From Asterias rubens (taxonomy: Eukaryota): a stretch of 64,000 nucleotides of DNA. The notes under the pieces are model-generated. The model did not search any database. It saw only the letters and a list, made by a program, of their open reading frames with translations, and was not told where the DNA came from. The DNA lies in NCBI RefSeq assembly GCF_902459465.1, contig NC_047062.1:22816001-22880000 (forward strand), given 5' to 3'. This document shows positions 2,306-38,253 of the stretch, piece after piece; positions within the stretch are counted from its first letter, which is position 1, and every line of letters starts with the position of its first letter. A program made the translations under genes and the position numbers.

Positions 2306-2899
2306 TCATGTGGTGCGAATTGCGTATAAATACCTTCTGCGAATTGGCGATCTACTGCGATAAGGTGCCGATTCGTAGCGGCTGCTTCCATATGCATCTC
2401 CGCTATAGCGTGATCTAGGCTCATCGCGATACCCAGCACTTCCACTTCCACCACGGCTGGAGTAGTCGCTATAACTGCTGTAGGATCCTGGGGGGCCTCT
2501 GCTTCCTCTTGGGGCGCCTGGCCCATCTCCTCTACCTCCGCGTGATGGTCGCATCGCGCTGCCGCCTCTTGATGAACCACCGCGAAAGCCACCACCACTA
2601 CCACCACGCCTCCCACCTCGGTCTCCTCCTCGCATGCCCCCTCCTCCTCCATCCTGACGGCCTTTTCCTTTGGACGGTTCCACCCTGATATGCGAGCCGA
2701 GGAAGTTGTGGCCATCCAAATCCCTCATGGCCTGTTCAGCATCTGAAGTGTTGAAGTATTCGATGAAAGCGAAACCTGGTGGGTTTCTAGCGAGCCAAAC
2801 GTCGCGAAGACTTCCAAATTTTCCAAATTCGCGGTCGATATCCTGTTTTGTAGTGCTGAGATTCAAACCCCCAACGTACAGTCTGCCCTCCATCAACAT
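2306..2899 (-). CDS. SRSF3: SR splicing factor of the SRSF3/SRSF7 (RBP1) family: RRM, RGG/Gly-rich linker and short RS tail, no zinc knuckle
   Basis: The RRM has the family motif DVWLARNPPGFAFIEY. ATG at 2899 follows an acceptor (cattttacttgcag| at 2914), so the ORF-track extension to 3100 is intronic. A 5'UTR exon donor lies at 3542 (aaacg|gtgaga). Unspliced stop at 2306 gives 197 aa. A donor at 2334 (AG|gtattt) can instead join acceptors at 1979 (stop at 1916) or 1861. SRSF3 versus SRSF7 orthology is not resolved. Confidence 0.85.
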   Translation of the reverse strand: MLMEGRLYVGGLNLSTTKQDIDREFGKFGSLRDVWLARNPPGFAFIEYFNTSDAEQAMRDLDGHNFLGSHIRVEPSKGKGRQDGGGGGMRGGDRGGRRGGSGGGFRGGSSRGGSAMRPSRGGRGDGPGAPRGSRGPPGSYSSYSDYSSRGGSGSAGYRDEPRSRYSGDAYGSSRYESAPYRSRSPIRRRYLYAIRTT

Positions 2900-3542
2900 C
2901 TTGACTTGTTTCTCTGCAAGTAAAATGACAACAACACAAGAGCATTTAAACACGTTTATTCCATAATTAACAAGCTGGCACATTTCTCCTTTGAACTTTA
3001 TCAGTGCCAAGGTCGTATGTACGATCTTTTTTATGTCCTCAAAAAGTTTTGAATCACTTGTACATTTACGACCCATACAATTGTTATCACGCGAGGGCAT
3101 TGTTACTCAAGAAACACTGTGTGACTTTTGGGATGAACAACAAAGCCTTCCAATAAACTAAAGGCAAAGCAAGGGCAACACAAATCAGCAAGAAAAACTG
3201 GAAAGATACATTGTTTTGGGGAAGAATATTGTCATAAAAACGTGTTTCCATTCGAAAAGCTATTTCACCTCCTGGAGAGATATAGGCGTAGGTCCAAGGC
3301 CAAAAGAAGTGGAGGGATTCTAGTGTATTTTGTGCTATTATGGGGCCAATCTTTGGGGCGATTGTGTATTTCGAGTGCGTGTGTGCCGCTCGCAGCGCTG
3401 CATCCCAAAAGAAACTATTGAAAATGTGTTCATATCAATTAAAACAACAAATATTCTCTTCCAGAAATTTGCTATAACATGTGTTCCTTGTATTATGTAA
3501 ATAACAAGCTTCTCACACAATATTAAAGAACCTTATCTCACC

Positions 3543-4095
3543 GTTTAAATGTCTTTAATTCTGGAAAGTACACACACGAATAAGTCAGTTGTTTGGATGC
3601 CGTCGTACAAAGGTCAACGTGAACCCGCGGAAAAGTATTGAAATGCCCTGCGTTCCATTACAATCAGGGTACCATCGAATATGCAAACCATGCAAACCAA
3701 AGATCGTATAGCGCCGCTACACGATCTTTGATGCAAACTACTCACTTCATACTATAATCCATCCTGCAAAGGATGGAGGGGGTGGGGGAGAAAAGCAGTG
3801 CGTGTCTAGCAATTTAAAAAAGGAATGTCAAAACAATGCTAAAACACTATTATAAAGACAAACTGGTTAAAAATTGATCGTTCTAAACGAATTTTTATTC
3901 AAGGTTGTGGTAAAGTCATTGGTGAAAATACCAACTGCAAGATTCTCAACCTCCCAGTGTTGCATGGTTTTATTCAAGTTGTGCACCGCCCTCTAGAGTT
4001 TTGAAACTGACCGAGGATTTATTGTATGAAAAGTGATTAGTTAGATTTTAGATATTGAACTTTGGATAAAACAGTGATTTTGCTTATTTTCAATA
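3543..4095. promoter_or_regulatory. Bidirectional promoter region between SRSF3-like (-) and UBXN1 (+)
   Basis: The SR gene 5'UTR exon ends at 3542 and the UBXN1 ATG is at 4096. The genes are divergent and about 550 bp apart. The TSS positions are inferred. Confidence 0.6.
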
Positions 4096-22059: not shown

Positions 22060-25000
22060 TTAACGTGGGTAGTAACCCTGGTTGAAGTTTCCCCAGGCTT
22101 GTTGGTACTGCTGGTACTGCTGTAAAGAGAGAGGTCAAAGATGATAAAAGACTGCCCATATACCAAACTGCTCTTTGATTGACACAATTGGTTTCAAAAT
22201 TTGGCCAGCGCCCGATTTTATGGAGATGCTTCAACACAAAAAAGAAGCTCAGCACAAGAGCTATGATTACCAGTGGAAATACCATCTCACATGTACCATC
22301 TCCGACCAAAATCATTTCTGCCAGTCTAAAATTTATCAAGCAATATTTTTTGCTTTTAAAGCAGCTCTATGAAAAAGACAACAAAGGTGGAGGGGAGACA
22401 GTGTGGCCATGAACGGCACGACACATTGTACAGTAGGCCTGACACTTTACGGAGGCATTGGAGTTGATTGCCTCAATGCCACCTGGTCATTGCCTTGGTG
22501 CCCTTGAAATGCTCCAGTAGAAATTTACAAGTTTCTCGTAAGGTGCCCTTTACCAAGGAGAAAATGCATTGGTGCCCTTGCCCTTTCAAAAACCATACAG
22601 GCCTGGCACTGTATTGTGACGGGATACTTCCAAACAAATTTACCTGATTGTAGTTGTTATTGGGAGGTGCATTGTAACCGCCTGGTCCCGGAGGGGGCCC
22701 ATAACTAGGAGGAGGACCCTGTGGGCCGTACGGGGCCCCCTGGTTGTAGTTGCCCCAGGCGGCAGCATTCTGGCCCGCTTGTTGCGGAGACTGTGAGTAG
22801 TCCGCTGGTCCGTTGTAGGGCTGGGCTGGTGGCATCTGTCCCTGGGGTGGCGTTGAAGTGACCGCGGGGGTCTTGGCTGGTGTCGTCGACGGCGTTGCAG
22901 CAGCTGCAGTGGTTGTGGTCTCTTTCTTGGCCTTCTTCTCCGGTTGGGTCGGAGTGCTGCAACGAAAAACAAAGAATTACAGTAAGCATATTGAACAAAG
23001 GACAAAACACAAACTAAGTTATCATGCCATTTGAACTGATTTTTCCCCCCGAATCATTACCACAGCCCTCTCTGAAAACAAAAACTTATTTTTCTTAAAA
23101 TAAAATGATAACTTGTTTAGAATACCCGTGTACAGAGTTCAAGTCAGACCCTCTCTTCCATGCTGGAAATGCATTGCTCTTGTGAACTGGTCTGGCTGGT
23201 CTCTCTACAGCAGAAGTAGCATGAGCGCCGGGCGACTGGGACTTTGAATTACCACTGGTTTCACTGAAAAACATGGAATTTTCAGCAGCATACAATTTTT
23301 GCTTTTGTTGCGTTCGATTTTCCAATTTTTTTTACCATGAGCATCTTTATACCATGTATTATGTGCAAATGTGCGACCATATATTTTTTCAACGTTACCA
23401 ATATTGGCCACACCTTTCAAAAGGTTTGGTTGCTTTTAGTACGACACAAACGTCCACAGATTTATATTAAACTTACATGGTTTAAAGATAATGATGGTAG
23501 AAAATTTTCCCTAAATTATTTCTTGCTTAGGTGCGGTAGTTTTTGAGAAATGAGTAAAACAATTTCACTAAAATAATTTTCGTCTCAGTGAGATGAAAAC
23601 TATTTTAGCATATACAACGGTTTTACGCAACTCTCCCAAAAACATTTCTCGCTGTGATTTTTGTTTTGTTTTTTTCTCAAAAACTTGACGACTTTATGAA
23701 GATAAATTTTATTACATGCATCTTCATTAACACTGAGTGAGGGATTCATGTCATGGGCAAAATCTTGAAAATTAATGAGGATTTTAGTAAAATTCACAAG
23801 CGGAATGGTGGGAAGGGTAGTTTCCCTACTTACGTTGCCTCCGCAGTTCTCTTTTTGCTTGCAGCTTGTAGGATCTCCAGCTGTCCCTTCAGTAACTCCT
23901 GGTGTTCCTCATACGCAGTTTGTAATCTGGGGTAGGAATCAAAGAGAAAATCAATCCATTCTTCAATGATCATTTTTCCCAACTTCAGTGCCCAATGTCA
24001 TGGCTCTGCTTACCATAAGCACAGAACTGCGCTTGCCGAAGTAGGGAATTCTGTACTTACGTCAAGCATGTTTCACGTTTAGCTGGGAACTACGTGCGCG
24101 AGTGTTCTCCATGTTACCGAGCATTCTTCGCTTACATGGCTAGCGCAGAAATTTGGTGCTTGCGCGTAAGCCATTGTCAGTGCAGACCTTGGTGGTAAGC
24201 AGAGCCATGTTCTTTGAATGGCGCAACCTTTAATCTAGTAACAGATGATTCTATCACAGATGTTAAATTAGACGTGCAAATGGATAAAAACTCACTTAGA
24301 CACATCAGTTCCGAAGTCCATCAGGTATGTGAGTCGCCGCTGGGAGAACTTCATCTTGTTGTCCACACTGGTGCTGGACTGTTCTCCCTTCTGGAAGAGA
24401 TCCAGGATGATGGGCTCATTGTTGGGAATCTGCTGGATCTCCAGGTCCAGTAGCTGCAGGTACACTCTGGATTTATCCTACAGGTTATCAACAACAAAAT
24501 AATGCAAATTCAACATCTATTAAGCAGTTGCTGTACCCACTGCTACAACATGTAATTCGAACTGCCTCAAGCTACCGGGCAATCTCCTGGTCTAGTTGGT
24601 AAGACACTGATCTAGAATTGCAAAGGTCGATGGTTTGAATCCCAGCGGGTAGTATGCCTGTGAGTTTGTTTTTCACAAATCTCTGGAAAGTACTGAGTAT
24701 ATAGTCAGGGTTCTCCCCACGTACAAGCTAGCGTATCGGACCCCACGCCGTAGGGGGCTTCGCGCTTCGCGCTCGCATGCTGGGATTGTGAACATCCAAA
24801 ATTAAAAGCCCCACAGTTTTGAAAAATCCTGGGGAGAACCCTGATAGTGCTAACACACATCGGTGTAAATGGGTAAAACCAAAATGAATATTCTTACAGT
24901 AGAGGTTGATTTGATTTCTTAATGAGAATAGTGACAATGATGTTGATTGATAAAAGTGAAGCTCAGTGATTCTCATGGCGCTCCAACTTTATTGACCCTG

Positions 25001-28000
25001 GGCACAGCTTCATAGAGCTGCTTAAGCACTAAAAGTAGCACAACATATAATGCGTATCTCTGATAACCAAATGGTGTACTGACCTTTGCCTCTTCAAGAA
25101 CTTCATACAGCACCTTCCTGGCACTCATCACATCATTGAGAACCTGCATGCAACAAAAGAAAGATGAATAACGTACAATTTTCCATTCATATTGCACTTT
25201 GTTATTACTAGTACTTTGTTGTCTCTGTTAGCGCTTCATAATTTTATACATAACTGAGGTTCTCTTTACTGGCACTGGACATAAAAGTGCCCCATACTAT
25301 AAATACAGGAAAACTGGTATGCCCCTTCACGCACAAAGTTTAAGCCCTCATGTTTACTGGTATAAACATTACACCAAGTTGGAGGGTTACAGTCCGGTTC
25401 ATTTTTCCTGCGAACGCTTCATACAAAGCAAATTTTCTTGTGTCATCAAAATTCGTTTGACATTTGCATTTGCATGAAGTATGAACCAGGCTTAATTTCA
25501 CAGATACACCCGCACTGACCTTTGCGTAATATCTGGACAGCTTGGAGCTCAAGAAGAATTTGATCTGTTGCTGATTGTGCGCCGTGATGCGATTCTTCAA
25601 GATGTCCACCACCCCCTCTTTGTTGTTGACCCGGCGTTCCAGGCTCACTCGTTCCAGGGTCACCATGATGAGTTCCGGCAAGTTCTCCTCCAGCTTCTTG
25701 AGGACCTCCTTGGCTATGTTCATGTTCCCTATCAAACAAAATAATAATAATAACAATAATACTAGGTTCTCATATAGCGTTTATCAAACCCCTGGGGTGT
25801 ATCAAAGCGCTTATTATTTTGTCTTGTTTGTTGTTAAATAATTTTAAGCGTTTTTGTCTGTACTGTATGAATCATGGCCAGTTTTAATTTCCCCAGTGTG
25901 GGATAATAAAGTTCTTATCTTATCTTATCTTATCTTATATGGAGCTACGTTTTGAAGTATGAGGCCTACTCTTCAAAGCACCATGTAATGGTTTTACAAG
26001 GTGCTGTGGCGCAATACGCAGCCAATCAAACCAGGATTACCGGGGAGAACCCCCTTCTCTTTAAGTTAAGCTCACTTATTTCTTTTAAGCTTGTTACAAA
26101 ACACATGGGACCAATGGCTGAACATCTCATCCGAAGGACGAAGCATCATGGTTAAGAGCGAGCAACAGTATTCAACCTTCAATTACCACTTTAAGCGTTT
26201 TAGTAAATTGCTGAATTAACAGATACTTTTTAACAGAAATACATCTTAGGGGATCAGGTTGGCTCAGTGTTTTTTTCTTTCCCTGCCTTCCATGAATCCC
26301 ACCTCAGAAGAGAACCTTGCATATGGATTGGGTTTTCAGTCCCGAGCTGGACCCAATTTCATGGCTCTGCTTTATCATATTACCAAAGAATCAACACTTA
26401 CAGAAGCAGGGATTTCCACGCTTACGCCACACATATTTCACAAGTTAGCAGGGAATTTTTGCTTGTGCTTGTGCATACTAAGTTTTTATGCCAAAAATTA
26501 TTTTCAGCAATTACCAATAGTGTCCAGTACTTTAACAGATAACCAGATTCATTGAATGAGGCTTCACAAGAAAGACCATACCTTGTTTTTCCTCGAATGC
26601 TGCCCAGCGAAGGTGAATACTTGGTTTTCTGGGAAGATGGATGTTGCAGGCTCGTCTGTAGACTGAGCTCACACCCTCAATGCTGTGCGGCTCAAGGTAC
26701 TTGGCGTACTGCGATGTTAAAAAATAATAATAATAATGGATTCTTATATAGCACACATATCCTTCATTCAGTGATGCTCAAGGCACTTTATCATAGTATT
26801 TTCCAGCAAAGAACATAGTATTTTCCTGCATGGACATATTTGCTCCGTATTTTTGGACGTCTTACAAAACGTGACAAACTTTTGAAATGAAATTTCCACT
26901 TGTTAGTTTTAAGTATACATTTATATATGATTTAAAAATAACAATCAAACGATTAGGAGACCGAGGGTAGGGTCAAGGCAAACGAGAGACCAGTGGGACT
27001 CATGGATCCTACCTTCATCCAGAACTCCTCATAGAGAGCACAGGCCACTAGGCAGCGCTCATACAGGATCAAAACTCTCTCGTGGGTGCCGTTGGTCGTC
27101 TCAAAGTCCAGATACTCCCGCCAGTTCTTCAGCTGGGACTTCTCAAGGGGCTTGGCGTGGAAGTAAGGTCTTCTTATCTGCAAATACACATCAAATAAAT
27201 GTAAACTTAATACATTTAGTCTAGTAGCAATGCCAATAAACAAGCCAGTTACAAAGGGAAGACAGAGGTTGAGCTATGTCGGTGTCCTGAGGAGAGATGC
27301 TGGGGCAGAGACCACAACAAAGTTGGCTGCCTGCATAAAGGACAGGGAAGATTTGAGTCAACACCGGGGATCCCGCCTACGGGCGACACGATGATGAATT
27401 ATTTGCATGGTCACAAGTTGACGCTCAAACTTGATGCACGTGACTGAAGACTTTGGGACAAATTTGGGCAAAGCAAGGTACCATTGTGCCATACACATTC
27501 ACCAAAAATTGTGTAAGAGTCATCGTAATTATGCAAAAGCTTGCTTGTTTAGAACTCAAAATAAATGATGTCAAACTTCGAGGTCGTGTGCCGGCAGTAT
27601 GCCACGTAATACGCAGAGCACCTTCGGGCGGTACGAGTGCTAAAGGGTTAAGCCCAGTTCATACTTCCTGCGAATGCGATACGAATGTTAACGTCACAAA
27701 TTCGCAACAAATAATTCGCAGCACTTCAACTCTGCTCAACTCACTTGGGAATACCGCTGCGAAAGGAGGGTTGTGACGTCAAATCCACGTCAAATTTGCT
27801 TCGCATTCGCAGGGAGTATGAACCGGGCTTTAAGCAGCTCTTGAAATTTGGCCAAGGTTAAACTCACCCCTTCCTCATAAGCCCATCTTTTACTGACTTC
27901 CTGCTCTGTCAGGCGATAGATGGTCAGACGTGATTCGATTACTTTCTTTCGGATAGCTTCATTCTCTTCGTCGACTTGCTGTTAACAAAAGAAAAAATGA

Positions 28001-31000
28001 CAACAAAAAGTTCACAAATATTATTTTACATCACTAAGAAATTTAATTCCAGTAAAAATCACAACTTACTCAATGTATCTACGCAACTTTCCAAACATGA
28101 AAACAAGTATAGGAGTATAGTAAAGTTTGCGGTAACACCATGTAATGATAATCTCTAAATGAGTTGGGATGGTTCAGCTTTCTCCAGAAGACGATCAGAA
28201 CATACTGATCGAAACGTCAAGTTGAAACCATTGGTTCTTCTCAGAACCACCTCAACTCATTCAGAGATATTCATACTATGGTGTTACCGCAAACCTTACT
28301 ATATCGTAGTTCCACCATACAAACTTTCAAATCCTACTTAAAGACACTGGACACTACCGGTAATTGTCAAAGACCAGTCTTCTTACTTGATGCATAAAAT
28401 AACAAACCTTAAATTGGGCTCAATTGGTCATTGAAGTTGCGAGACAATAATGAAAGAAAAAACACCCTTGTCACATGTATTTGTGTGCTTTCAGATGCTT
28501 GATTTCGAGACCTCAAAATCTAATTCTGAGGTCTCAAAATCAGATATTTTGTGGAAAATTACTTCTTTCTTGAAAACTACGTTACTTCAGAGGGAGCTGT
28601 TTCTCACAATGTTTTATCTTATCAACACTTCTCCATTACTCATTACCAAGTAAGATTTTATGCTTATAATTATTTTGAGTAATTACCAATAGTGTCCAGT
28701 GCCTTTAAGTATAAGAGTGTTTGGTGTTGGAGTTGTTTGGCAACAACTTTGGAAATCTTTCTGAAACTTACAGCGGAGACCTTTACCTTGGAGCTAGCAC
28801 CTGGTTTGACGGACATAAGAGGATCCATCCCTGGAACTCCAACGTCCACCCCAGGTGGGGCTTCCTCATCCCCTGGGGGCCCTACATCACCGTCGTCCCC
28901 AAAGCTTTCTGTCCCAGGCTCGGCTACTCCCAATTCGTCAACCACCTCCATGCGAAGCTTGATGAACTCATCCACAGAGAGGATGTCTTTGGGATGGCGA
29001 CCCTTGTTATTAACGTGCTCTTTAAATCTAGAAACAGGAAAGTAGACTCACTTTAGAATTCAAGGCCTGATACTTCAAGGAGGCAACCAAGGCGTTTGCT
29101 TCTATGCCTCCTGGTCATTACCTTGGTGCCCTTGAAATGCTCCAGTAGAAATTTACAATTTCCTCATAAGGTGCCCTTTACAAATGAAAAAATGCCTTGT
29201 GCCCTTGCCCTTTCCAAAATGAAGCGTACAGGCCTGGAACTCCTTCCGAGCACAACAGTGAAACATTTCGGAGAGACATTTCTAGTAATTTATATCTCCT
29301 GGCCCAATTCTTTGTTCATGTAAAGACTCAGCTTCCTTTAGTCACAGCAGCACCTGTTAGGCGGCCAGGTTGGTGTAGTGGCCTCTTGCCTTGCCTTCCG
29401 CCTCTAGGACCCCAGTTCAATCAAACTTAAGAAAATGTTTAAGTTTAGTTATATCCTGCAAATAAATGATATTGTTGGTGCTGTGGTTATTGTTGTTGCT
29501 TATGTTTTGTTTTGATTAAGAGCCTTACTTTTCAAAATGGTGACTGTAAAGCTGAGTGGGGATCGTCAGGAGTTGGTCGTAGATCTTGGTCACTTTATAC
29601 CACTCCTTCCTGTCCTTCTCAAAGCTGATGTACATATCCCACAACTTGTCTGAGCGGAAATCGGTACCAGCAGCAGCGATGGCCCTGGCGTACACTCTGA
29701 AGAGGTAGAAATACGCAGGGGATAAGGTTAGGCCAAGTTTTCCTAAAAAATAAATAGTGTATGTAAATATTGCATCTAAAATGCAGAGTTAGTGCCCGAG
29801 GGAGATGTGGATTGCTATCCCAAAGTACTAAGGTAGCATAAATTAACATTGCTTTTTGACATCTATTTAAATTGCTGCAGTACCCACTGCTAAAACGTGG
29901 TCTTAGCAATCTCGGTGGTCTAGTTTGAATGCCACTGCTCTAGAATTGCAAAGGCCGTGGGTTTGAATCCCGCCCAAGTAATATGCCTTGGATTATTTTT
30001 TACAGAACTTGGGAAAGTACCGAGTATACAGTGCTAACACAGATTGGTGCATATGGGTAAAAACCAAAATGAACATTCTAGTTCACAAACACCTACACCC
30101 TTACGTGGTTTTGCATTGTGGGCAAAACTATGACTTGAAAATGTGGTACCGAAAAGTTCAGGATAAATAATTTGATAAAAAAACTTACTCTCTCAGTCTG
30201 TCGGTGATACTGTCCTTGGGAGCCGTCTGAGCGATAAACTGGATGTACTGCAACCACAGATCCACACTAAGAGGGATTGCCTTCATGCCCGACTCAAACA
30301 CCTTATCCAAGGAAAAAAATGCAACAAGAGCCAACACTTTTAGAACCAGTCGTCAGGATTTTCACTTCCACTTGGTAACCCCAAACAATGCTAAGATTAT
30401 AATTCAAAACTAACCATTTTCAAAACCCACCCCTCCCCTAAATACAATTTCTCCATTCAGCCAAAAATCTTTTTCTTTAATGGTACTTCGATTGTGGTGA
30501 TCCAATTTTAGGCTCACATCAAAGAAATTGGGCAGAGTTGTCAAGACTGAAAGCGTGAGAATGGAGAAACAATTAACACACTAACAAATCAAATACCCAA
30601 GTGGAAGTGAAAGAAACAAAAACAGGTAAAAAAAAGAAAAAAAAATGTATAATCGCATATCTTTATCCCTTCCCACAATATATTAAAACATCATTCATCA
30701 ATTGAACCATACATCATAATAATAACTGGGAGGAAACAAAACATAGTAATTTTTTGAAACTGTGTTATAATATATAACATAACTTGTTCTAGGCCTGATT
30801 AGTTTAAGTATATAAACCTTCAGAACACAAACTCCACATCCTTGATGTCATCATCGGACGCTTTGGCCAAGATCCGGAGATTATTCCTCTGGGGTTGCGA
30901 TTATGAACCAACCGACCCAGATCACTTTCCAAGTACCCTGTTGTTGAGTGTCCGAGAGTGTTGTGTGTGTCTGTGTGCTAAGACTCACTGCTAAAAGTTC

Positions 31001-34000
31001 CCAATAACAAAACCGCATATCAAATCAAACGCAATTGTGTCATTTGAAGGGGGCTATGATTTCCTCCCAGACAAAAAATAAACTTGCGAACTTGATCAAA
31101 CTTATTCCGCCCCTTCTGCTTTTTTGTTTTCACAAAATTTCAAAAGCTTCCATCACCAGCAAACCAATGGTGATTCTGAGTGTGTAATGATTTTCTCTTT
31201 TAATAGCAAAGTATAGTGTTTTGCTCAATAAGACTTCATCTGTTTGCACTTAGTGTGTTTTGTTTTTATATCCCCTAGCTTTCACAAAACTTCATCATTT
31301 CAATTTTGATTCTGAACATGCAACGACAGAGCTGCATTCAAAGCACTTGAACATGTTGTTCTTAACAAATAAAGCATTAAAAAAAACAGATTTGTGATAC
31401 CACCATAAAGACAGGTTAAACGAAATTCCAGAAAATTAGATGAACAAATTTTGAAAAAGATTTTTTCTTTAAAAGCAGCAGTTGAAAGATGTTACCTTTA
31501 TTGTATAACATATAGACTCTCTAATAAAAAAGACTACATCATTATTTATATTAATGCAAAATAAATGGATAGGAAATTAAAGTGAACGGAGCTTAGATAC
31601 TCAGATTAATCACCCAAATTTACTACTATTATCATTAATATTTGTTTAGTTGTTCCAGCAAACATGAGACTTCTTGACCTGTTGTTGGGAAAAATCTACT
31701 CTACTTGTTAGTTCAGGTAAACTACAACAAGCTGTACGCAGGAGCTGGTGTTCACGATCGATGATGTCGGTTGGTTTCCACTAACTAAATCCTGTGGAGA
31801 AATTAGTGTTAGGGCACCTATCTGTTAAAACTAACACATTTAATAATACCAACACATTACTATTATTTATTTTGCAAGTCCCCGAATATCGTTGAAGGTA
31901 TTCTGAGCACACACAATATCAAGAAATGACATTTACTAATTAAAACCTTTGAGTTACATAATATTAATGTGTATTAAAATGTGTTTGAAGTCATAAATGA
32001 ACGTATAAATCTACAGAAAACAATAAGCCATTACATTAACATTATGTTATTTAAACTTTTGTAATCATTCTACTATATCCCAAGTAATTAATTTTTTGTC
32101 AACTCTGATTCTTTTTTATTTTTATATTTTTTTATTCCATACTTGTTTTAATGTGATGTTTTTGTTTTATTGTTTTTATTTAGGGTGACGGTTGTTCAGT
32201 GACAAAGAATCTGTATACTGTAAATCAATGTCTGAAGGTGTCGTCAAAATTTTCAGTAACAGAGAAAGTTTGTTTATGTGAAATTTAATGATGGTTGGTT
32301 CACATCGTGAGCACTATGGTGTTGTTATGCGATAGCCCTATTAACATTAGTTGCCAATACGCTAGACCCCCTGCGCATCTTGGGGCTTCGCAAAAGTCTT
32401 TCTTGTAAGATAATTGTATTGTGTTATTGTAGGCGCCTTGAGCACTCTATCGGTGGATATGTGCGCGTTATAAGTTTTGCTCTTATGGTAATCATTTTTG
32501 TCGCAAGGTGCTTTAAACTTAATCCAAGTTATCTGCAAATGAGAAAATATCATGAATTAACAATTCAAAATTATTGACTATACAAGGGGGATAAGCTCGG
32601 TGTCTTTACCCACAGCAATCATTCTAAACCCAACGTTATGTTTCTGTTAGACCAAGGACCACAGTAGTTAATCGTTATTCTTGACATGGGATCAGGCATA
32701 CTCCCATAACGATAATAATCGGTTTCTGTATAGCGCTTTATACACCCGGCTTGGGATTCGAACCCCCACTCTGCAGAACAGAAACACCAGAGTTTGAATT
32801 CGGTACTCTTAACCACTCGGCCACGACACTTCCACAAATCAGAGGCCAACTTTTTTTTATCCCGAGATGTCAAAACAATTACTCAGGGAGAAAGGGTCAA
32901 TCTGGTTTTCGAAATGGGTTTTGTGAACTACACTCATGAAAGAGCTTGAACTGAAATGGGAACAAGTGATCTTGCTGAAATAAATTAATTTTTATCTGAG
33001 GTATCGACATCAAAGTATTGTCGTTTTGACATACAACTTCAATGAGGTTGAGGTTGGGGCCTAATTTTGATAATTACGAAAAATGCAATATCAAAATTAC
33101 ATATAAATTATTACCAAATATATTATAAACAGATTTAAATAGCTTTCTCATCAAATTTGATACGCTCAAGTGGCTGCTTTTAGGTTAGTCATTACATCAA
33201 ATCTGAAAAATCAAGTAAATGTTTGGTTGCAGCAACATCAAAACCATTGCTACTATGGTGCTGTATTTACATACATATGCAATGCATGTATTTCAAACAC
33301 TTTGTCATAAGTAACATTGCGAAGCATTTTGCATGAGCGAGTTCATTGCAGTGACACAACAAATTCTCTGCAAATTGTTTTTTAATCTAACTGGAAAGCT
33401 TTTGGTGAAAAACTTTTAAATTGTGGGGTTGGAGAGTTGGGTTGTAACCGAACTATCTTGAGATCTTGAACCTACCTCTTGTGCCTTCTCGATGTCATTG
33501 GCCTTCCTTCGTTCCATATCTGCGTACTTCTTCCAGTATCCATAGCAATACGGATAACGAGCGAGGAAAGCATCAAAGGCCTTCCTCACTGATGGCATAT
33601 GAACCTAAAGTGACAGAAGAGACAAATAGTCTGCATGTTACTCAATGCTTTAAGGCAGAGTTGTAACCAAGTCATTTTTCCTGAGGTCAAGTCAAGTCAC
33701 AAGTCATCTTTGCTCAAGTTAAGTCAAAGAGAGGCAAAGAGAGAGGTCATAAAAAGTAGAACTCTTTGAACATCCTTTCAAATCTCAGGCCCGATACTTC
33801 ACGAAGGCAACAAAGGCGATTGCCTCCATGCCCCCTTGGTCATTGCCTTGGTGCCCTTGTAGACATGATCCAGTAGAAATTTACAATTTCCTTGTAGGGT
33901 GCCCTTTCCCAAGAAGAAGATGCCTTGGTGCCCTTGCCCTTTCAAAAAGCAGCATACAGACCTGACCCTAGGTACAAGGATTCAGCAACTATTTTCCCTC

Positions 34001-37000
34001 TTACCTGTTGCTCCACATACTGCAGCAGATAAGTCCATCCAGTGAAGTCCGTGGGTTTGTCCTTGACTGCCTTCCAGTATTTTTCAAGCTCTGGTGGCGG
34101 AGCTTTCTCCGCATCAGCCTTTGCCTTCTCTATTATAGAAAATAGAAAAAATCAAAGCAATACATGTAAGAATTTTCATCAAATGTGTTGAAAAACTCTG
34201 TTAAACTTCTGCAAGGAATTTAAATCTCACATCTTCTACTCGAGTTGGATTTGAACCCCTGCCATTCTAGAGCATTCATGTATTACCACTAGACCACTGA
34301 GCAAGAGACCAGGGGTGGATTTCACAAAAAATTAGGACTAGTCTTATCTCGAGTTAGGAAGAGTTACTCGTCCTAACTAGACCGATCCAGTAGGCTCCGC
34401 CCACGGCGCACGTGTGAGCAAGAACACGTGGGGCTTTCCAATGCCTTTCTGCACAACTCTGCCGCGCACGCCAAGATACGCGCACGCATGTCGGACCTTA
34501 GTGTCAGACCTGCGTTGCATTGTGATTGGTCAATACGCAATGGGGCGGAGCTTAATGGATCGGTCTCTTGGGACTAGCTGTACGTTTTTTTTAAATCTCT
34601 TAGGACTATCTCTTTGTGTAATTGACCCCAGGGCCAAATTTCATGGTTCTGCTTACCGTAAGCAAGTAACAGGCGTTTATGCCAGCTGGGAATTCCAGAG
34701 CTGCTTACCGTTAGCAAATAATCAGTATTTATGGAGGCAGGGAATTCCGTGCTTACATCAATTGTATTTCACAGGTTATCAATGAGTTTTGCTTGTGTGT
34801 GTAACTCCAGGCCTGCGGTGGTAAGCGAGCCATGAGATTGGGCCCAGTTTGAATCTTGTGAACTAGACGTCAAGATATGATGTTAGACTAAAGACTAAAA
34901 GGGATTTACTGACCTTCTTTTGTCATTTTCTCACTTTTCTTGACTGGCTCTGCTGCCGGTTTGGTAGCATCCACCACTGGCTTGACTTCCACTACTTTCT
35001 TGACTTCAGTAGCTTCCTTAGTGGAAGTAGCATCTGCCTTTTTTGTCTTCAACTGTGTCTTAGCATCAGTCGCCTTCTCTTTTGGTTTAACAGGATCTTT
35101 TTGTGTGGTTCCGGCATCTTCTGCTGGCTGGGCCGCCTCCTCGGCGGGTTTCTGATCAGCCTTTGGCTGCTCTGTCTCGGGTTCCTCCATCTTATCCTCT
35201 GTTGATTCTTGCGGCTTGGTGGCTTCTTGCTCCATGGGTTCGTCTTCTTGCTGTTTCTGATCCTCAGTAATTGTATCGTCAGAGTCCTCTGCGTCTTTTA
35301 TTTCCATCACTTCATCTTCTTTGACCTCCTCTAAGACAATGGCATCATCTTCTTTCTCCTCCGCATCCCCATCTTCTGCTCCCACAATGGCTTCACCTCC
35401 AGGACCAGCCGATATTGCCTCCTCCAGACGTTGGACGAGAGCAGCTTTGACTCCCTTTGAGTCCAGACCCCGAACCGTCAGTTCTGAGCGGAGTTCCGCT
35501 ACTTTCATCTTAGAGGGTGTGATACCATCACTAACATCTGTAATGAGAAGCCGTTAAAAAAATGAGAGGACAGATTTCAATAAACCAAGATGTTGAAAAG
35601 AATTTTTTTGTGGATAACTGTCCGTGTCCTGCAAACACTTTTTCAATATCTCATTTGAGTGAATTCGACACGGGAAAGTTACTGTATCCTGCCACCACTT
35701 TATGCATGACGAATAAAGACAACGCAATGTAAACCAAAAGCAATAATACACCTTAAAGGCAGTGGGCACTATTGATAATTGTCAGACTAGCCTTCACAGT
35801 TGGTGTGTCTCAACATATGCATTAAATAATAAACCTGTGAAAATTTGAGCTCAATCGGTCATCGAACTTGTGAGATAATAATGAAAGAAAAAAACACCCT
35901 TGTCACACGAAGTTGTGTGTGTTTAGATGGTTGATTTCGAGACCTCAAGTTCTAAATCCGAGGTCTCAAAATTAAATTCATGGAAAATTAAAACCATTAC
36001 ACTTTCGAAACAGAACAAAAAAATAAAAGTTCAAAAATTTACAAATAACTTGGAGGGTTTAAAGAAGGTAATGGTAACAGACTTCTCTTGAAATATTATT
36101 CCATGAAATGCTTTACTTTTTGAGAAAACATTAAAACAAATGATCAATTCTCGAGAATTACGGATTTATTTTAAACATGAGTCATGACACGGCGAAATGT
36201 GCGGAAACAAGGGTGTGTTTTCCCGTTATTTTCTCCCGACTCTGATGACAGATTGAGCCTAAATTTATCACAGGTTTGTTATTTTACATATATTATAAGT
36301 TGCGATAAACGAAGTGTAGGCCTTTGGTCTTGGACAATACTGATACTGTTTACCGAAAGTGTCCAATGGCTTTAAATAGGCGAATTCATTGTTGTTTTTC
36401 CTTACTAATACTAAATATAAAAAAAGGAAACAACTTTTAGTGTAAAACTACTCGGCTGATGCCACAAAAAATCTAACATTGATCATAATTTTGATGAATG
36501 AGTAGGCCTAAATTAAATAAATAAAAAAATTCAATTAAATTTAATTGCCAAGACAAGTGAAGAGAAGTACCCAATACAATACAATACAAAACAGTTTCAT
36601 AAGGTTTATCGCGAAAAAGCAAAATATCAAGAGAGGGCGCTGTTGACCCCACACAAAGGTATAGGCGTTGCATGCACGAGTCGTAGAAACTGCATAGAAA
36701 CCGCCCCATATTCCTTCCCACAATGCATTGCGTTTCTGAATCGCGATAAACCTTATTAATGAATGACAAATTATAAACAAAACCATCTAGCCATTTCCCA
36801 TAAGGTTTATCGCGATTCAGAAACGCACTGCATTGTGGGAAGGAATATGGGGCGGTTACTATGCAGTTTGTACGACTCGCGCACGCAACGCCTATACCTT
36901 TGTGTGCGTTCAACAGCGCCCTCTCTTGTTATTTTGCGGATAACTTTCCGTATGGCGCCACCACTTTTTCACTCATTTTTACAAAAAGGGATATATCAAT

Positions 37001-37417
37001 CAGGTAAATAAGTTCCTATATTATTTTATATCGAATGAAAAAGTGGTGGCGCCATACGGAAACTTTTCCTATTTTGCTATTCGCAATAAACCTTATTGAG
37101 ATTTGAGACTCAAGTCAAAATTTGCTTGAGACCGAGCTGACTAGGACCGAGTAGACCCATATGCACAGCATAAACGATGGTGACTTCATTTCATGCACCA
37201 ACTCGACTCGCATGCATTGAAATGCACGACTAACAAAAAGTGAAAAACATCAACATTAAACAATTGCATTGAGCATTTCCAACAAAATCAAAAGAAGATC
37301 GTATGTACCTTTCTCATCTGTAGGAATACTTGGGTCGTAGTCACTACTGATAACAGGTGTTTCGGTTTGCGATGGCTCTGTTGCACCATTTTCTGATATT
37401 TCTTCAGGGCTTTCCAT
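22060..37417 (-). CDS. PRPF39: Pre-mRNA processing factor 39 (U1 snRNP HAT-repeat protein) with N-terminal SAP domain, 942 aa
   Basis: Exons 37417-37309, 35537-34914, 34129-34005, 33604-33476, 30301-30189, 29696-29529, 29027-28787, 27978-27868, 27177-27013, 26708-26582, 25728-25520, 25143-25084, 24477-24296, 23926-23834, 22956-22644, 22119-22060. All are phase-consistent. Motifs: [94 protein letters not shown]. Confidence 0.96.
23126..23263 (-). CDS. PRPF39: Candidate in-frame cassette exon of PRPF39 (46 codons)
   Basis: Acceptor catgtttttcag|, donor cacgg|gtattc, phase 2 to 2, open in the PRPF39 frame ([14 protein letters not shown]...SDLNSVHG). Confidence 0.55.
24706..24843. mobile_element. 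hAT-type MITE nested in a family C SINE
   Basis: TIR CAGGGTTCTCCCCA/TGGGGAGAACCCTG, flanked by atagt/atagt. The host SINE resumes after it. Confidence 0.85.
27257..27394 (+). mobile_element. RTE/RTEX LINE 3' end fragment
   Basis: Translates as [33 protein letters not shown]...RLRATR*, followed by a tgatga tail. Same clade as 8198-8362. Confidence 0.75.
27651..27829. mobile_element. PIF/Harbinger-like MITE
   Basis: TIR AGCCC(A/G)GTTCATACT(T/C)CCTGCGAATGCGA, flanked by TTA. Partial copies near 21680, 25445-25495 and 48742-48880. Confidence 0.8.
28125..28341 (+). mobile_element. Penelope-like pLTR repeat (family F) with inverted arms and a hammerhead-like core
   Basis: Arms gtttgcggtaacacca (28125) / tggtgttaccgcaaac (to 28294) surround CCAGAAGA-C-GATCAG-aacata-CTGATC-GAAACGTC. 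Confidence 0.65.
28342..28704 (+). mobile_element. TTAA-flanked MITE family A, full length (Kolobok-like)
   Basis: ttaa|AGACACTGGACACT...AGTGTCCAGTGCCT|ttaa. Partial copies at 35757-35990, about 47402-47635, 54172-54331 and 26505-26535. Confidence 0.85.
34310..34850. mobile_element. Nested MITE cluster in PRPF39 intron 2
   Basis: An aggggtggatttcaca...taggactagtc element (another copy at 49740-49865) is interrupted by a gaccgatcc...ggatcggtc MITE (about 34380-34565). It is followed by a gggccaaatttcatg...catgagattgggccc MITE (family G; also about 24000-24210, 26345-26500, 45240-45425, 48640-48690, 56495-56785). Confidence 0.75.
36600..37095. mobile_element. Two inverted copies of a TA-flanked MITE, the second carrying a nested GG...CC MITE
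   Basis: taaggtttatcgcg...cgcgataaacctta at 36600-36755 and 36801-37095. Insert 36938-37069 is flanked by tattttgc/tattttgc. Confidence 0.9.
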
Positions 37418-38253
37418 TTTTCAGCGTGGCGTCGTGGACGTATGCCGTATAATTGCAACAGCGCCCCCAACCTGTCGTTTGTACACGTCGTATGGTGATG
37501 AGGGCCTAGGGAGCCTTGTGATAGACTTGATTCAAGCCTCGTTTTCGTGCGAGAAGTCCCTAATCCCTATCCGAAGTCAAAATGTAGCTATTGGGGTCCC
37601 GAGAATGGCCAGTCAAAGGTTGGGGGGGGGGGGGGGGGGTCGCTGTTGCTCAAGTAAACTAGCTAATACTCTTGGAATTCGTTATTAAACGATTAGACCA
37701 TTCTTTAGCAGTATCAAAATCTGTTAAGCAACTGCTAGGCAGCTCTGTCAAATTGCCCAAAATGGAGGGTATTAGGGCCGCCTGTTGCATTTCTAAATAA
37801 CAATAGCTATTGTTGATGGGAGATGTTGCATAATCAAGTAATGAGCTAATTTTACTTCTGGAAATCGTTACCAAAGGCACAGTAAAACACTATTATTTTC
37901 AGTAAACGTTAAAATACCATTATTTTGCAATAAACGTTTCTGCTTAGCAGCTTTGTGATCACTGTGAAGAAAGATAGGTTGGGGGCGCTGTTGCTATCGA
38001 AACGGCGACTTCGGCTACAGCTACGGCTAGATTGCGCGCGTCTGCCTATTCTTCAACACTGGTAGACGCGCTGATCTAGACGCGCGGACCGGTCATGCTA
38101 CATACTACCTCCGTGTGGTGGTGAAGACAGGGTCACGAGGTGGCGGGGCGTTTAAATTCACGGTGCTTTTTTGAAGTTGAATGGTGGTGAATTCCATGGT
38201 TGAATGTTGTTTTAGTAAAAAGGTCTATCCCGAAAGTTGATGGCAGGGAAGAA
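37418..38253. promoter_or_regulatory. Bidirectional promoter region between PRPF39 (-) and SLX4IP-like (+)
   Basis: The divergent ATGs at 37417 and 38254 are 836 bp apart. The region has CpG-rich patches, a GC box (gtggcggggcg) and inverted gcaacagcgcccccaacct motifs. Confidence 0.65.

Follow-up and report, generated by a model that had tools for sequence, protein, structure and literature searches.

The window, a stretch of 64,000 nucleotides of the Asterias rubens genome (NC_047062.1, positions 22,816,001 to 22,880,000), carries on its minus strand a PRPF39 gene. We modeled it with 16 exons, giving a coding sequence of 2829 nt and a protein of 942 amino acids (Table 1). Exon 1 encodes an acidic segment rich in Ser, Thr and Pro, and the 5′ UTR extends to at least 37439, as a contig piece at 37439-37309 was joined to 35537 in all four transcript runs described below. 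Exons 5–16 (22060-30301) encode the remaining HAT-NTD, the inter-domain linker, the HAT-CTD and a Pro/Gln/Tyr-rich tail; their junctions come from chaining by frame and splice consensus, backed by Pfam matches and an alignment with insect proteins rather than by reads. Scanning the PRPF39 introns for tRNA and Rfam elements found none. Inverted repeats are present in intron 1.

Table 1. Features of the PRPF39 gene (positions in the window; aa, residues of the modeled protein)
Feature	Position	Strand	Description
Coding exon 1	37417-37309	-	aa 1-36 plus 1 base; start ATG, GT donor
Intron 1	37308-35538	-	1771 nt, phase 1, repeat-rich; spliced with GT..AG in four runs
Coding exon 2	35537-34914	-	624 nt, phase 1-1 symmetric; SAP and disordered linker, aa 37-244
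SAP core	35523-35413	-	37 residues, aa 42-78; Pfam PF02037
Linker part of exon 2	35412-34914	-	acidic first half, Lys/Ala/Pro/Thr-rich second half
Intron 2	34913-34130	-	784 nt, phase 1, repeat-rich; spliced with GT..AG in four runs
Exon 3	34129-34005	-	linker end and HAT-NTD start; PF23240 34.1 bits; junctions in contigs
Exon 4	33604-33476	-	HAT-NTD; PF23240 57.1 bits; contigs join exon 3 to exon 4
Exon 5	30301-30189	-	frame and splice-consensus chaining
Exon 6	29696-29529	-	frame and splice-consensus chaining
Exon 7	29027-28787	-	frame and splice-consensus chaining
Exon 8	27978-27868	-	frame and splice-consensus chaining
Exon 9	27177-27013	-	chaining; 104.8 bits to murine Prpf39 6G70
Exon 10	26708-26582	-	frame and splice-consensus chaining
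Exon 11	25728-25520	-	frame and splice-consensus chaining
Exon 12	25143-25084	-	frame and splice-consensus chaining
Exon 13	24477-24296	-	frame and splice-consensus chaining
Exon 14	23926-23834	-	frame and splice-consensus chaining
Exon 15	22956-22644	-	frame and splice-consensus chaining
Exon 16	22119-22060	-	stop TAA; frame and splice-consensus chaining

An earlier note on this DNA had named the gene PRPF39, an identity borne out by the Pfam PRP39 HAT families, a match to murine Prpf39 and colinearity with insect PRPF39s. A genome scan with PF23240 (cut-off 27.7) gave four exon matches, the best at 71.5 bits, and two exons of the gene matched PF23241, the HAT-CTD family, at 99.9 and 52.7 bits (cut-off 33). 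Exon 9 is about 80% identical to murine Prpf39 (6G70), whereas other HAT proteins (SART3, CSTF3, CRNKL1 and SYF1) reached at most 31.7 bits, and residues 257-940 of the model form one colinear alignment with insect PRPF39s. Since every strong PF23240 or PF23241 match falls in this gene, PRPF39 is, by these profiles, single-copy in the assembly. Weak PRP39-HAT matches on three other contigs (C5, C9 and C16) were considered as a possible SAP-less paralogue and rejected, as they are SART3-like.

Mammalian PRPF39, a HAT-repeat auxiliary factor of the U1 snRNP, is homodimeric, binds U1C and assists U1 at weak 5′ splice sites; homodimerization via the HAT-CTD and binding to U1C and the U1 snRNP were described for the mouse and human proteins, and the targeting of mammalian PRPF39 is still discussed in terms of its HAT domains, which bind GC-rich RNA (PMC6582350, PMC9808567). 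The sea-star protein is orthologous to mouse PRPF39 across the HAT region, having both PRP39 HAT Pfam families, and shares with the mammalian protein a disordered N-terminus ahead of the HAT-NTD and a low-complexity C-terminal tail. The mouse N-terminal region, however, consists of 73 disordered residues with no domain, whereas that of the sea star spans about 258 residues and includes a predicted folded SAP domain. Yeast Prp39 and Prp42 are HAT-repeat proteins of this family too (PDB 5ZWN chain U, 26.6 bits) but are stable U1 components that form a heterodimer, and no SAP has been described for them.

The earlier note had placed the SAP domain and a long charged linker in an exon at 34914-35537, phase-matched to exon 1 and to the first HAT exon. 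We found an exon at that same site on the minus strand, bounded by an AG acceptor (intron ending cattacag, exon beginning ATGTTAGT) and a GT donor (exon ending AAAGAAG, intron beginning gtcagt). The phase match holds as well: the codon GAT is split between exons 1 and 2, and GAG between exons 2 and 3, in both cases with one base before the intron and two after it. Transcript contigs came from four runs of four studies, three on one species and one on a second species. In each run, one contig contained the junctions 37309 to 35537, 34914 to 34129 and exon 3 to exon 4, the second of these being the junction for which the earlier note had called; all the skipped segments were GT..AG ended on the minus strand, and one contig, at 3113 nt, has room for the whole 2829-nt coding sequence. 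Because these contigs join exon 1, the SAP exon and the first two HAT exons, the SAP exon belongs to the PRPF39 mRNA of two species, where it sits after exon 1 and before the first HAT exon. The overall architecture of SAP, linker and HAT repeats is virtually certain. It would be spurious if the assembly were wrong here, if a contig were chimeric or if the exon belonged to a distinct SAP gene nested upstream of PRPF39, a possibility that we raised only since two exon-based protein searches gave no SAP-PRPF39 and for which we found no support. Against it, all four runs, each independent and from its own study, showed the identical spliced structure in two species, with canonical sites and the frame kept, the SAP is under purifying selection (see below), and neither a separate gene nor another start codon is necessary; we consider its probability negligible.

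The SAP motif itself scored well above the Pfam cut-off, as the earlier note had anticipated: PF02037 matched exon 2 at 47.0 bits (E 1.8e-12, cut-off 23.9) over profile positions 3-36 of 37, and a separate HMM, made from 128 SAP sequences, gave 74 bits. The best solved SAP was that of human hnRNPUL1 (1ZRJ; 35.4 bits), followed by SARNP/Hcc-1 (2DO1; 30.3 bits), and exon 2 aligned to both without gaps. AlphaFold2 in single-sequence mode placed helices at exon residues 9-21 and 26-42, separated by the loop RGLD (22-25), which is the helix-loop-helix layout expected of a SAP, in a model whose pLDDT is only about 67–69. Between the second species and the window, the SAP core differs by three synonymous and no nonsynonymous changes, and this codon comparison shows it to be under purifying selection.

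The remainder of exon 2 behaves differently. Its linker of 166 residues, close to the roughly 170 E/D/K-rich residues first noted after the SAP, is part of a tether of about 180 residues ahead of the HAT-NTD. The tether is acidic at residues 79-160, where its net charge is -28, and residues 161-258 abound in Lys (22%), Ala, Pro and Thr; the same AlphaFold2 prediction shows the linker as coil with no secondary structure. Here the second species differs from the window by eight nonsynonymous and three synonymous changes and a 27-nt in-frame indel; as judged from these differences, the tether is free to change, yet the frame is kept.

The closest relative of this SAP lies in the same genome. The lead came from a short SAP match (P0017/L004), which proved to be the exon of hnRNP U in the sea star itself; the hnRNP U homologue lies on contig C1 at about 7.205-7.215 Mb. 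Its SAP is identical to that of PRPF39 at 31 of 37 positions, the lead-in ITPSK included, and is the nearest among 154 SAP proteins, the next having 28 of 37 and the others reaching a plateau of 26 or fewer. The two are sisters with a support of 0.87 in a tree of 37 residues. Both exons encode a SAP followed by 166-176 residues that run from acidic to Lys-rich, and both end in AAAGAAG before the GT, in phase 1. A common AAAGAAG end is unsurprising for a Lys/Glu-rich sequence. The PRPF39 exon differs from that of hnRNP U in being internal, with an acceptor and no start codon of its own. Beyond composition, the two linkers showed no homology (z 1.4-1.6; 75-97 of 1000 shuffles reached the observed score), and we therefore claim similarity at the level of the SAP only. 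Membership of the PRPF39 gene in the hnRNP U family was considered and rejected, as the gene is without the SPRY, P-loop NTPase and RGG parts; exons for SPRY, the GLPGAGKTTW P-loop and RGG are confined to the other gene, on C1 near 7.2 Mb (L015/L016).

These likenesses suggest that the SAP exon may have arisen by an ancient duplication of the hnRNP U exon, an origin whose chances we judge to be evenly balanced. In such an event, a copy of the 5′ coding exon of hnRNP U, with its SAP and acidic stretch, would have landed in intron 1 of PRPF39, which is of phase 1, on the branch that led to sea stars. The two SAP copies have reached saturation at synonymous sites (pS 0.89), so the event is old, and these sites give it no date.

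We then asked how widely the SAP is found in PRPF39. PRPF39 and Prp39 proteins described earlier had been noted to be without SAP, in agreement with the paper on PRPF39 structure and evolution, which never names SAP, and with the proteins that we scanned. Mouse PRPF39 has none. Among 120 hexapod PRPF39 clusters, obtained in a full-length protein search with a hexapod-like ORF (L043) that listed hexapods only, not one contained PF02037 or matched the SAP HMM at E<=10. These hexapod proteins (for example of Tribolium, Nasonia and Schistocerca) resemble the sea-star protein in the HAT region (37-41% identity) and in a long low-complexity N-terminus, with a median of 409 residues before the first HAT motif, but differ in being without the SAP in 120 of 120. 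No SAP was found in 41 metagenome PRPF39 loci, several of them intron-poor and fungus- or protist-like, among them a full ORF without introns (L043) and one locus whose first exon is complete (L047). Seven invertebrate-like metagenome loci show no SAP in the 2.2-3.1 kb that precede their first HAT exon; their true first exons fall off the contigs, and they were not taken as cases of absence.

Searches that started from the exons themselves said little about the distribution. A phmmer search with the SAP exon against 1.84 billion representatives gave 217 matches but no high-scoring carrier of the exon, and is uninformative in this respect; the top matches were protist multi-SAP proteins, ten longer ones of which were Acinus-like, BRCT-containing and similar in a Pfam scan, none being PRP39. 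One long protist carrier protein (P0007) has a near-consensus SAP at residues 694-735; a search confined to this region let just 7 candidates through the word filter and led no further. A protein search with the SAP exon, in a length window of 114-362 residues that leaves full-length orthologues outside, returned just two short SAP proteins, and the short SAP matches that resemble exon 2 (P0072, P0018 and P0017) lie on contigs of 0.7-2.7 kb with no HAT exons. In the ESM Atlas, the HAT-exon and SAP-exon queries brought up generic HAT/TPR and SAP clusters, none of them with a visible fusion. We found no paper that mentions a SAP-PRPF39 fusion; automatic sea-star gene models very likely include it already.

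Since mouse, the 120 hexapod clusters and the fungus- and protist-like PRPF39s are without SAP, the comparison favors a lineage-specific gain over a loss confined to vertebrates, a gain in the sea-star lineage being parsimony from distant outgroups only. The choice between gain and vertebrate loss posed in the earlier note leans towards gain in this survey of mouse, hexapods and fungus- or protist-like loci. Alternatively, the fusion could be ancestral to much of Metazoa or Bilateria and have been lost independently in vertebrates and hexapods. That the copy is old, given the saturated synonymous sites, would fit such a history, and the long hexapod N-terminal extensions could be remnants; in addition, an internal SAP exon that resembles the sea star's in its VKEDEV linker motif and runs on into a Lys-rich stretch lies on a contig from a marine metagenome (L001/L002), possibly an orthologue in another marine animal. 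However, at least two independent losses would be required by the absences listed above, and in the tree the PRPF39 SAP sits beside the hnRNP U SAP of the same animal instead of standing alone. We regard an ancestral fusion as unlikely but credible.

What might the SAP do? By analogy with hnRNP U/SAF-A, hnRNPUL1, SARNP and PIAS, it would act as a small nucleic-acid-binding helix-loop-helix, typically for double-stranded DNA. If the protein dimerizes as in mouse, the homodimer would bear two flexible anchors, which could concentrate PRPF39, and with it the U1 snRNP, on chromatin near nascent transcripts, and this placement could serve the choice of 5′ splice sites during transcription. That a U1 snRNP auxiliary factor is tethered to chromatin or nucleic acid, as the earlier note proposed, is plausible by analogy; the specific chromatin-tether mechanism we put at slightly short of an even chance.

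Some SAP domains, on the other hand, serve protein or RNA contacts rather than DNA. The PRPF39 SAP might likewise make contact with RNA or with proteins, such as factors of mRNP packaging or export or members of the hnRNP U network, as has been proposed for SAPs of the SARNP/Tho1 type, and would then link the U1 auxiliary function to mRNP assembly rather than to chromatin. SARNP/Hcc-1 is indeed the second-closest solved SAP, and on a factor whose mammalian HAT domains already bind GC-rich RNA a further contact with RNA or protein can be imagined. The nearest relatives of the PRPF39 SAP, however, are SAPs of the hnRNP U family, a DNA- or scaffold-attachment module, and we consider such a role improbable. 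It is about equally doubtful that the exon is a regulated cassette, whose skipping would yield a conventional SAP-less PRPF39 and hence isoforms that differ in localization. The phase 1-1 symmetry would allow this, as skipping preserves the frame (G+AG = GAG), and contigs miss rare isoforms; yet the single PRPF39 contig of each of the four runs contains exon 2, and a 37309 to 34129 joint is not among the joints listed.

Weighed as a whole, the combination of this architecture, an hnRNP U origin and a chromatin tether is the best explanation, and one that we hold to be somewhat probable. A more far-reaching version, which we think unlikely as it stands, is that an ancient exon shuffle from hnRNP U in the echinoderm lineage converted a U1 auxiliary factor into one anchored to chromatin, with two SAP arms on each homodimer; in these animals the choice of weak 5′ splice sites would then depend partly on the factor's position on the DNA and not on RNA motifs alone, and skipping of the symmetric exon might switch between tethered and free forms.

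SAP-PRPF39 is a new domain architecture of a known protein, composed of two well-known parts in one lineage. It is a candidate for exon shuffling between two RNA-processing genes, with the likely donor, hnRNP U, and the recipient both in the same genome. A conserved, selected SAP on a flexible tether may offer a natural experiment on the coupling of U1 recruitment to chromatin, and since exon 2 is symmetric and its removal leaves the frame intact, a comparison of tethered with untethered PRPF39 would be possible.

The second exon of PRPF39, which the earlier note had read as a SAP motif followed by a long acidic and Lys-rich stretch, encodes in frame a 42-residue SAP-bearing start and then 166 aa of low-complexity sequence. 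The Pfam SAP profile PF02037 matched exon residues 8–41 with 47.0 bits (E 1.8e-12; curated cut-off 23.9), and the exon scored 74 bits on an independent SAP HMM, built from 128 SAP sequences, on which positive controls scored 65–77 bits. Single-sequence AlphaFold2 predicted helices at exon residues 9–21 and 26–42 and no secondary structure thereafter; pLDDT was about 67–69 over the SAP and about 50 outside it. In the numbering of our 942-aa PRPF39 model, the first half of the linker (aa 79–160) is 42% Asp plus Glu with a net charge of -28; in the second half (aa 161–258) Lys makes up 22% of residues, and Ala, Pro and Thr are abundant. Both elements of that reading were therefore borne out.

We then addressed splicing. 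Exon 1 leaves one base, and the resulting GAT codon is completed by the first two bases of the SAP exon. Logan contigs of four RNA runs, from three studies of one sea-star species and one study of another, were compared with window positions 33000–37600. In each of the four runs, one contig carried three joints, 37309 to 35537, 34914 to 34129 and that between exons 3 and 4, and all the skipped parts had CT..AC ends on the plus strand, that is, GT..AG on the PRPF39 strand. Thus, the 34914 to 34129 junction, which the note had singled out as the check, is present in 4/4 runs, and the claimed phase match of the SAP exon to its neighbours holds. Exons 3 and 4 matched PF23240, the PRP39 N-terminal HAT family, with 34.1 and 57.1 bits. 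The remaining HAT-like open frames were chained by frame and splice consensus into a 16-exon, 942-aa model with a Pro/Gln/Tyr-rich tail, in which the junctions of exons 5–16 are predicted ones; its CDS of 2829 nt is compatible with the contig of one run, which is 3113 nt long. Insect PRPF39s aligned to aa 257–940 of the model as a single colinear block, and exon 9 matched murine Prpf39 (PDB 6G70) with 104.8 bits. The spliced contigs, the PF23240 exons and the colinear insect alignment support the proposed architecture, PRPF39 with an N-terminal SAP and linker, and the SAP exon is part of PRPF39. All strong matches to PF23240 and PF23241, the C-terminal HAT family, in the assembly lay within this gene, which is single-copy there; the candidate paralogues on three other contigs, C5, C9 and C16, gave weaker matches and are SART3-like. 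Identical scores on C9 and C16 suggest that the locus was duplicated recently or that a haplotype was left uncollapsed.

Features of the PRPF39 gene (window coordinates) and of related loci in the same assembly (G000)
Feature	Coordinates	Strand	Remarks
Exon 1	37417-37309	minus	ATG at 37417; GT donor follows
Exon 2 (SAP plus linker)	35537-34914	minus	AG acceptor and GT donor at ends
Exon 3	34129-34005	minus	HAT
Exon 4	33604-33476	minus	HAT
Inverted repeat, intron 1	36619-36937		138-nt arms, 94% complementary, 43 nt between
Inverted repeat, intron 1	36938-37069		37-nt arms, 92% complementary
hnRNP U/SAF-A homologue	G000:C1 about 7,205,000-7,215,300	minus	loci L014, L015, L016
SART3-like HAT repeats	G000:C5:22,568,061-22,570,302		PF23240/PF23241 cut-offs passed exon by exon
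SART3-like HAT repeats	G000:C9:253,977-256,189		as above
SART3-like HAT repeats	G000:C16:12,651,220-12,651,363		as above

Summed contig depth was huge in all four RNA runs at 35618–36387 in intron 1 (up to about 1.9 million at 35772–35925), 34232–34693 in intron 2 and 33770–34077 in intron 3; these stretches are transcribed interspersed repeats of very high abundance. Neither ARAGORN nor Rfam called the tRNA-like string near 34230–34300. The two inverted repeats of intron 1, onto which RNA-run contigs also map, look MITE-like or foldback-like. In three runs the last 28 nt of exon 4 and about 475 nt of the adjoining intron 4 were covered by a separate, uninterrupted contig (33000–33503). It could stem from pre-mRNA or a transcript that retains the intron, from carried-over DNA, or from a 3′ end within the intron, the last of which would give a truncated product of SAP plus 1.5 HATs. 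Upstream, about 17 consecutive C on the PRPF39 strand (about 37621–37640) lie roughly 200 nt beyond the 5′-most transcript contig end (37439), in the promoter region shared with the neighbouring SLX4IP gene.

The note had also held that described PRPF39s are without SAP. Our literature search found no paper that connects a SAP domain with PRPF39 or Prp39; mouse PRPF39 has 73 disordered N-terminal residues (PRPF39 structure and evolution paper), and the word "SAP" appears nowhere in that paper. Protein searches with exon 2 alone found only other SAP proteins and no PRPF39 fusion, the word-indexed search taking in only proteins 0.55–1.75 times the query length. Scanning metagenome contigs with exon 4 yielded 41 PRPF39 loci, none of which carried a SAP by our own HMM, even at E<=10. 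The metagenome loci L043, an intron-free 755-aa open frame, and L047, with a complete first exon, have acidic, Met-started N-termini of about 180 aa without SAP, and five intron-poor fungus- or protist-like loci have short N-termini and no SAP; seven invertebrate-like loci without SAP in 2.2–3.1 kb upstream were not counted as absences because their first exons lie off the contigs. With L043 as a full-length query we obtained 1679 matches, the best 120 of which were all hexapod PRPF39s (450–1220 aa) with long N-terminal extensions (median 409 aa); PF02037 was in the precomputed Pfam lists of none of these 120, and our HMM matched none. PRPF39 of two sea-star species thus has the SAP, and PRPF39 of mouse, of hexapods and of the fungus- or protist-like loci lacks it, in agreement with the note. 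As to its question of gain or vertebrate loss, parsimony, with mouse, hexapods and these loci as the outgroups compared, favours a gain along the line of descent to sea stars rather than a loss in vertebrates only.

A marine metagenome contig (L001, ENA ERZ27293330, 562–879 and 1055–1519; L002, a TARA contig) bears an internal SAP exon that has no start codon of its own and whose linker contains VKEDEV, as does that of sea-star PRPF39; a Lys/Glu-rich exon with KKVVEKKKATPKK follows, and the contig carries no HAT exon. This may be the PRPF39 SAP exon of another marine animal.

In exon 2, the contig of the second sea-star species shows 16 substitutions relative to the window and is longer by 27 letters, which leave the frame intact. 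All three changes in the SAP core were synonymous, and codon changes in the linker comprised 3 synonymous and 8 nonsynonymous. The numbers are small; the pattern is one of a constrained SAP domain on a fast-evolving, frame-preserving tether, with the exon under selection.

Where might the exon have come from? The best single-SAP match of an exhaustive search (P0017) lay on a metagenome contig, L004, essentially identical to L014 of the sea-star genome (G000:C1, about 7.21 Mb); that ENA metagenome assembly therefore contains DNA from the sea star itself or from a very closely related species. The locus is the sea-star hnRNP U/SAF-A homologue, whose first coding exon encodes a SAP with about 176 aa of acidic/Lys-rich sequence behind it; next come an Arg/Asp-rich exon, SPRY exons, an exon with a GLPGAGKTTW P-loop and an RGG/Gly-Tyr-rich tail. 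One of its introns (L016, about 2,890–3,560) holds at least six tandem copies of a roughly 79-nt unit, recognised in a six-frame listing as a repeated open frame, KGWLPQERHGQAWNRTKAM…. The two SAPs are identical at 31/37 residues, including the ITPSK lead-in; of the 154 SAP proteins that we collected, the runners-up reached 28/37 and those behind them <=26/37. They are sisters (support 0.87) in a 61-sequence tree on 37 residues, and the closest solved SAP is that of human hnRNPUL1 (PDB 1ZRJ). Both exons have a 5′ SAP and then 166–176 aa running from acidic to Lys-rich, are of similar size (624 nt and, from the ATG, 649 nt), and end in phase 1 with AAAGAAG before GT, although this 7-nt match is cheap in Lys/Glu-rich sequence and counts little for shared origin. 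The linkers showed no similarity beyond composition (z 1.4–1.6). Synonymous sites between the SAPs are saturated (pS 0.89) with dN 0.15, so that a duplication, if real, would be old and both copies kept by selection. An origin by exon shuffling from hnRNP U is about an even bet on these comparisons, with the homologue a plausible donor within the same genome.

We conclude that SAP-PRPF39 is a known protein in a new domain architecture. The variant is real and expressed, and its conservation extends to at least two species. DNA binding is known for the SAP domains of hnRNP U/SAF-A, PIAS and related proteins. In mammals, PRPF39 forms a homodimer, binds U1C, has a preference for GC-rich RNA and promotes the use of weak 5′ splice sites (PMC6582350, PMC9808567). 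By analogy, tethering of PRPF39 to chromatin or nucleic acid through the SAP, in line with the functional reading of the note, is plausible. Rival readings are that the SAP serves RNA or protein contacts, or that its exon is a regulated cassette, as would suit its symmetric 1-1 phase, since skipping keeps the PRPF39 frame. Under SAP-mediated tethering, the domain would fix the PRPF39 dimer, and U1 snRNP with it, close to transcription on chromatin or some other nucleic-acid scaffold, and the disordered, acidic-then-basic tether of about 180 aa would give this anchor reach.
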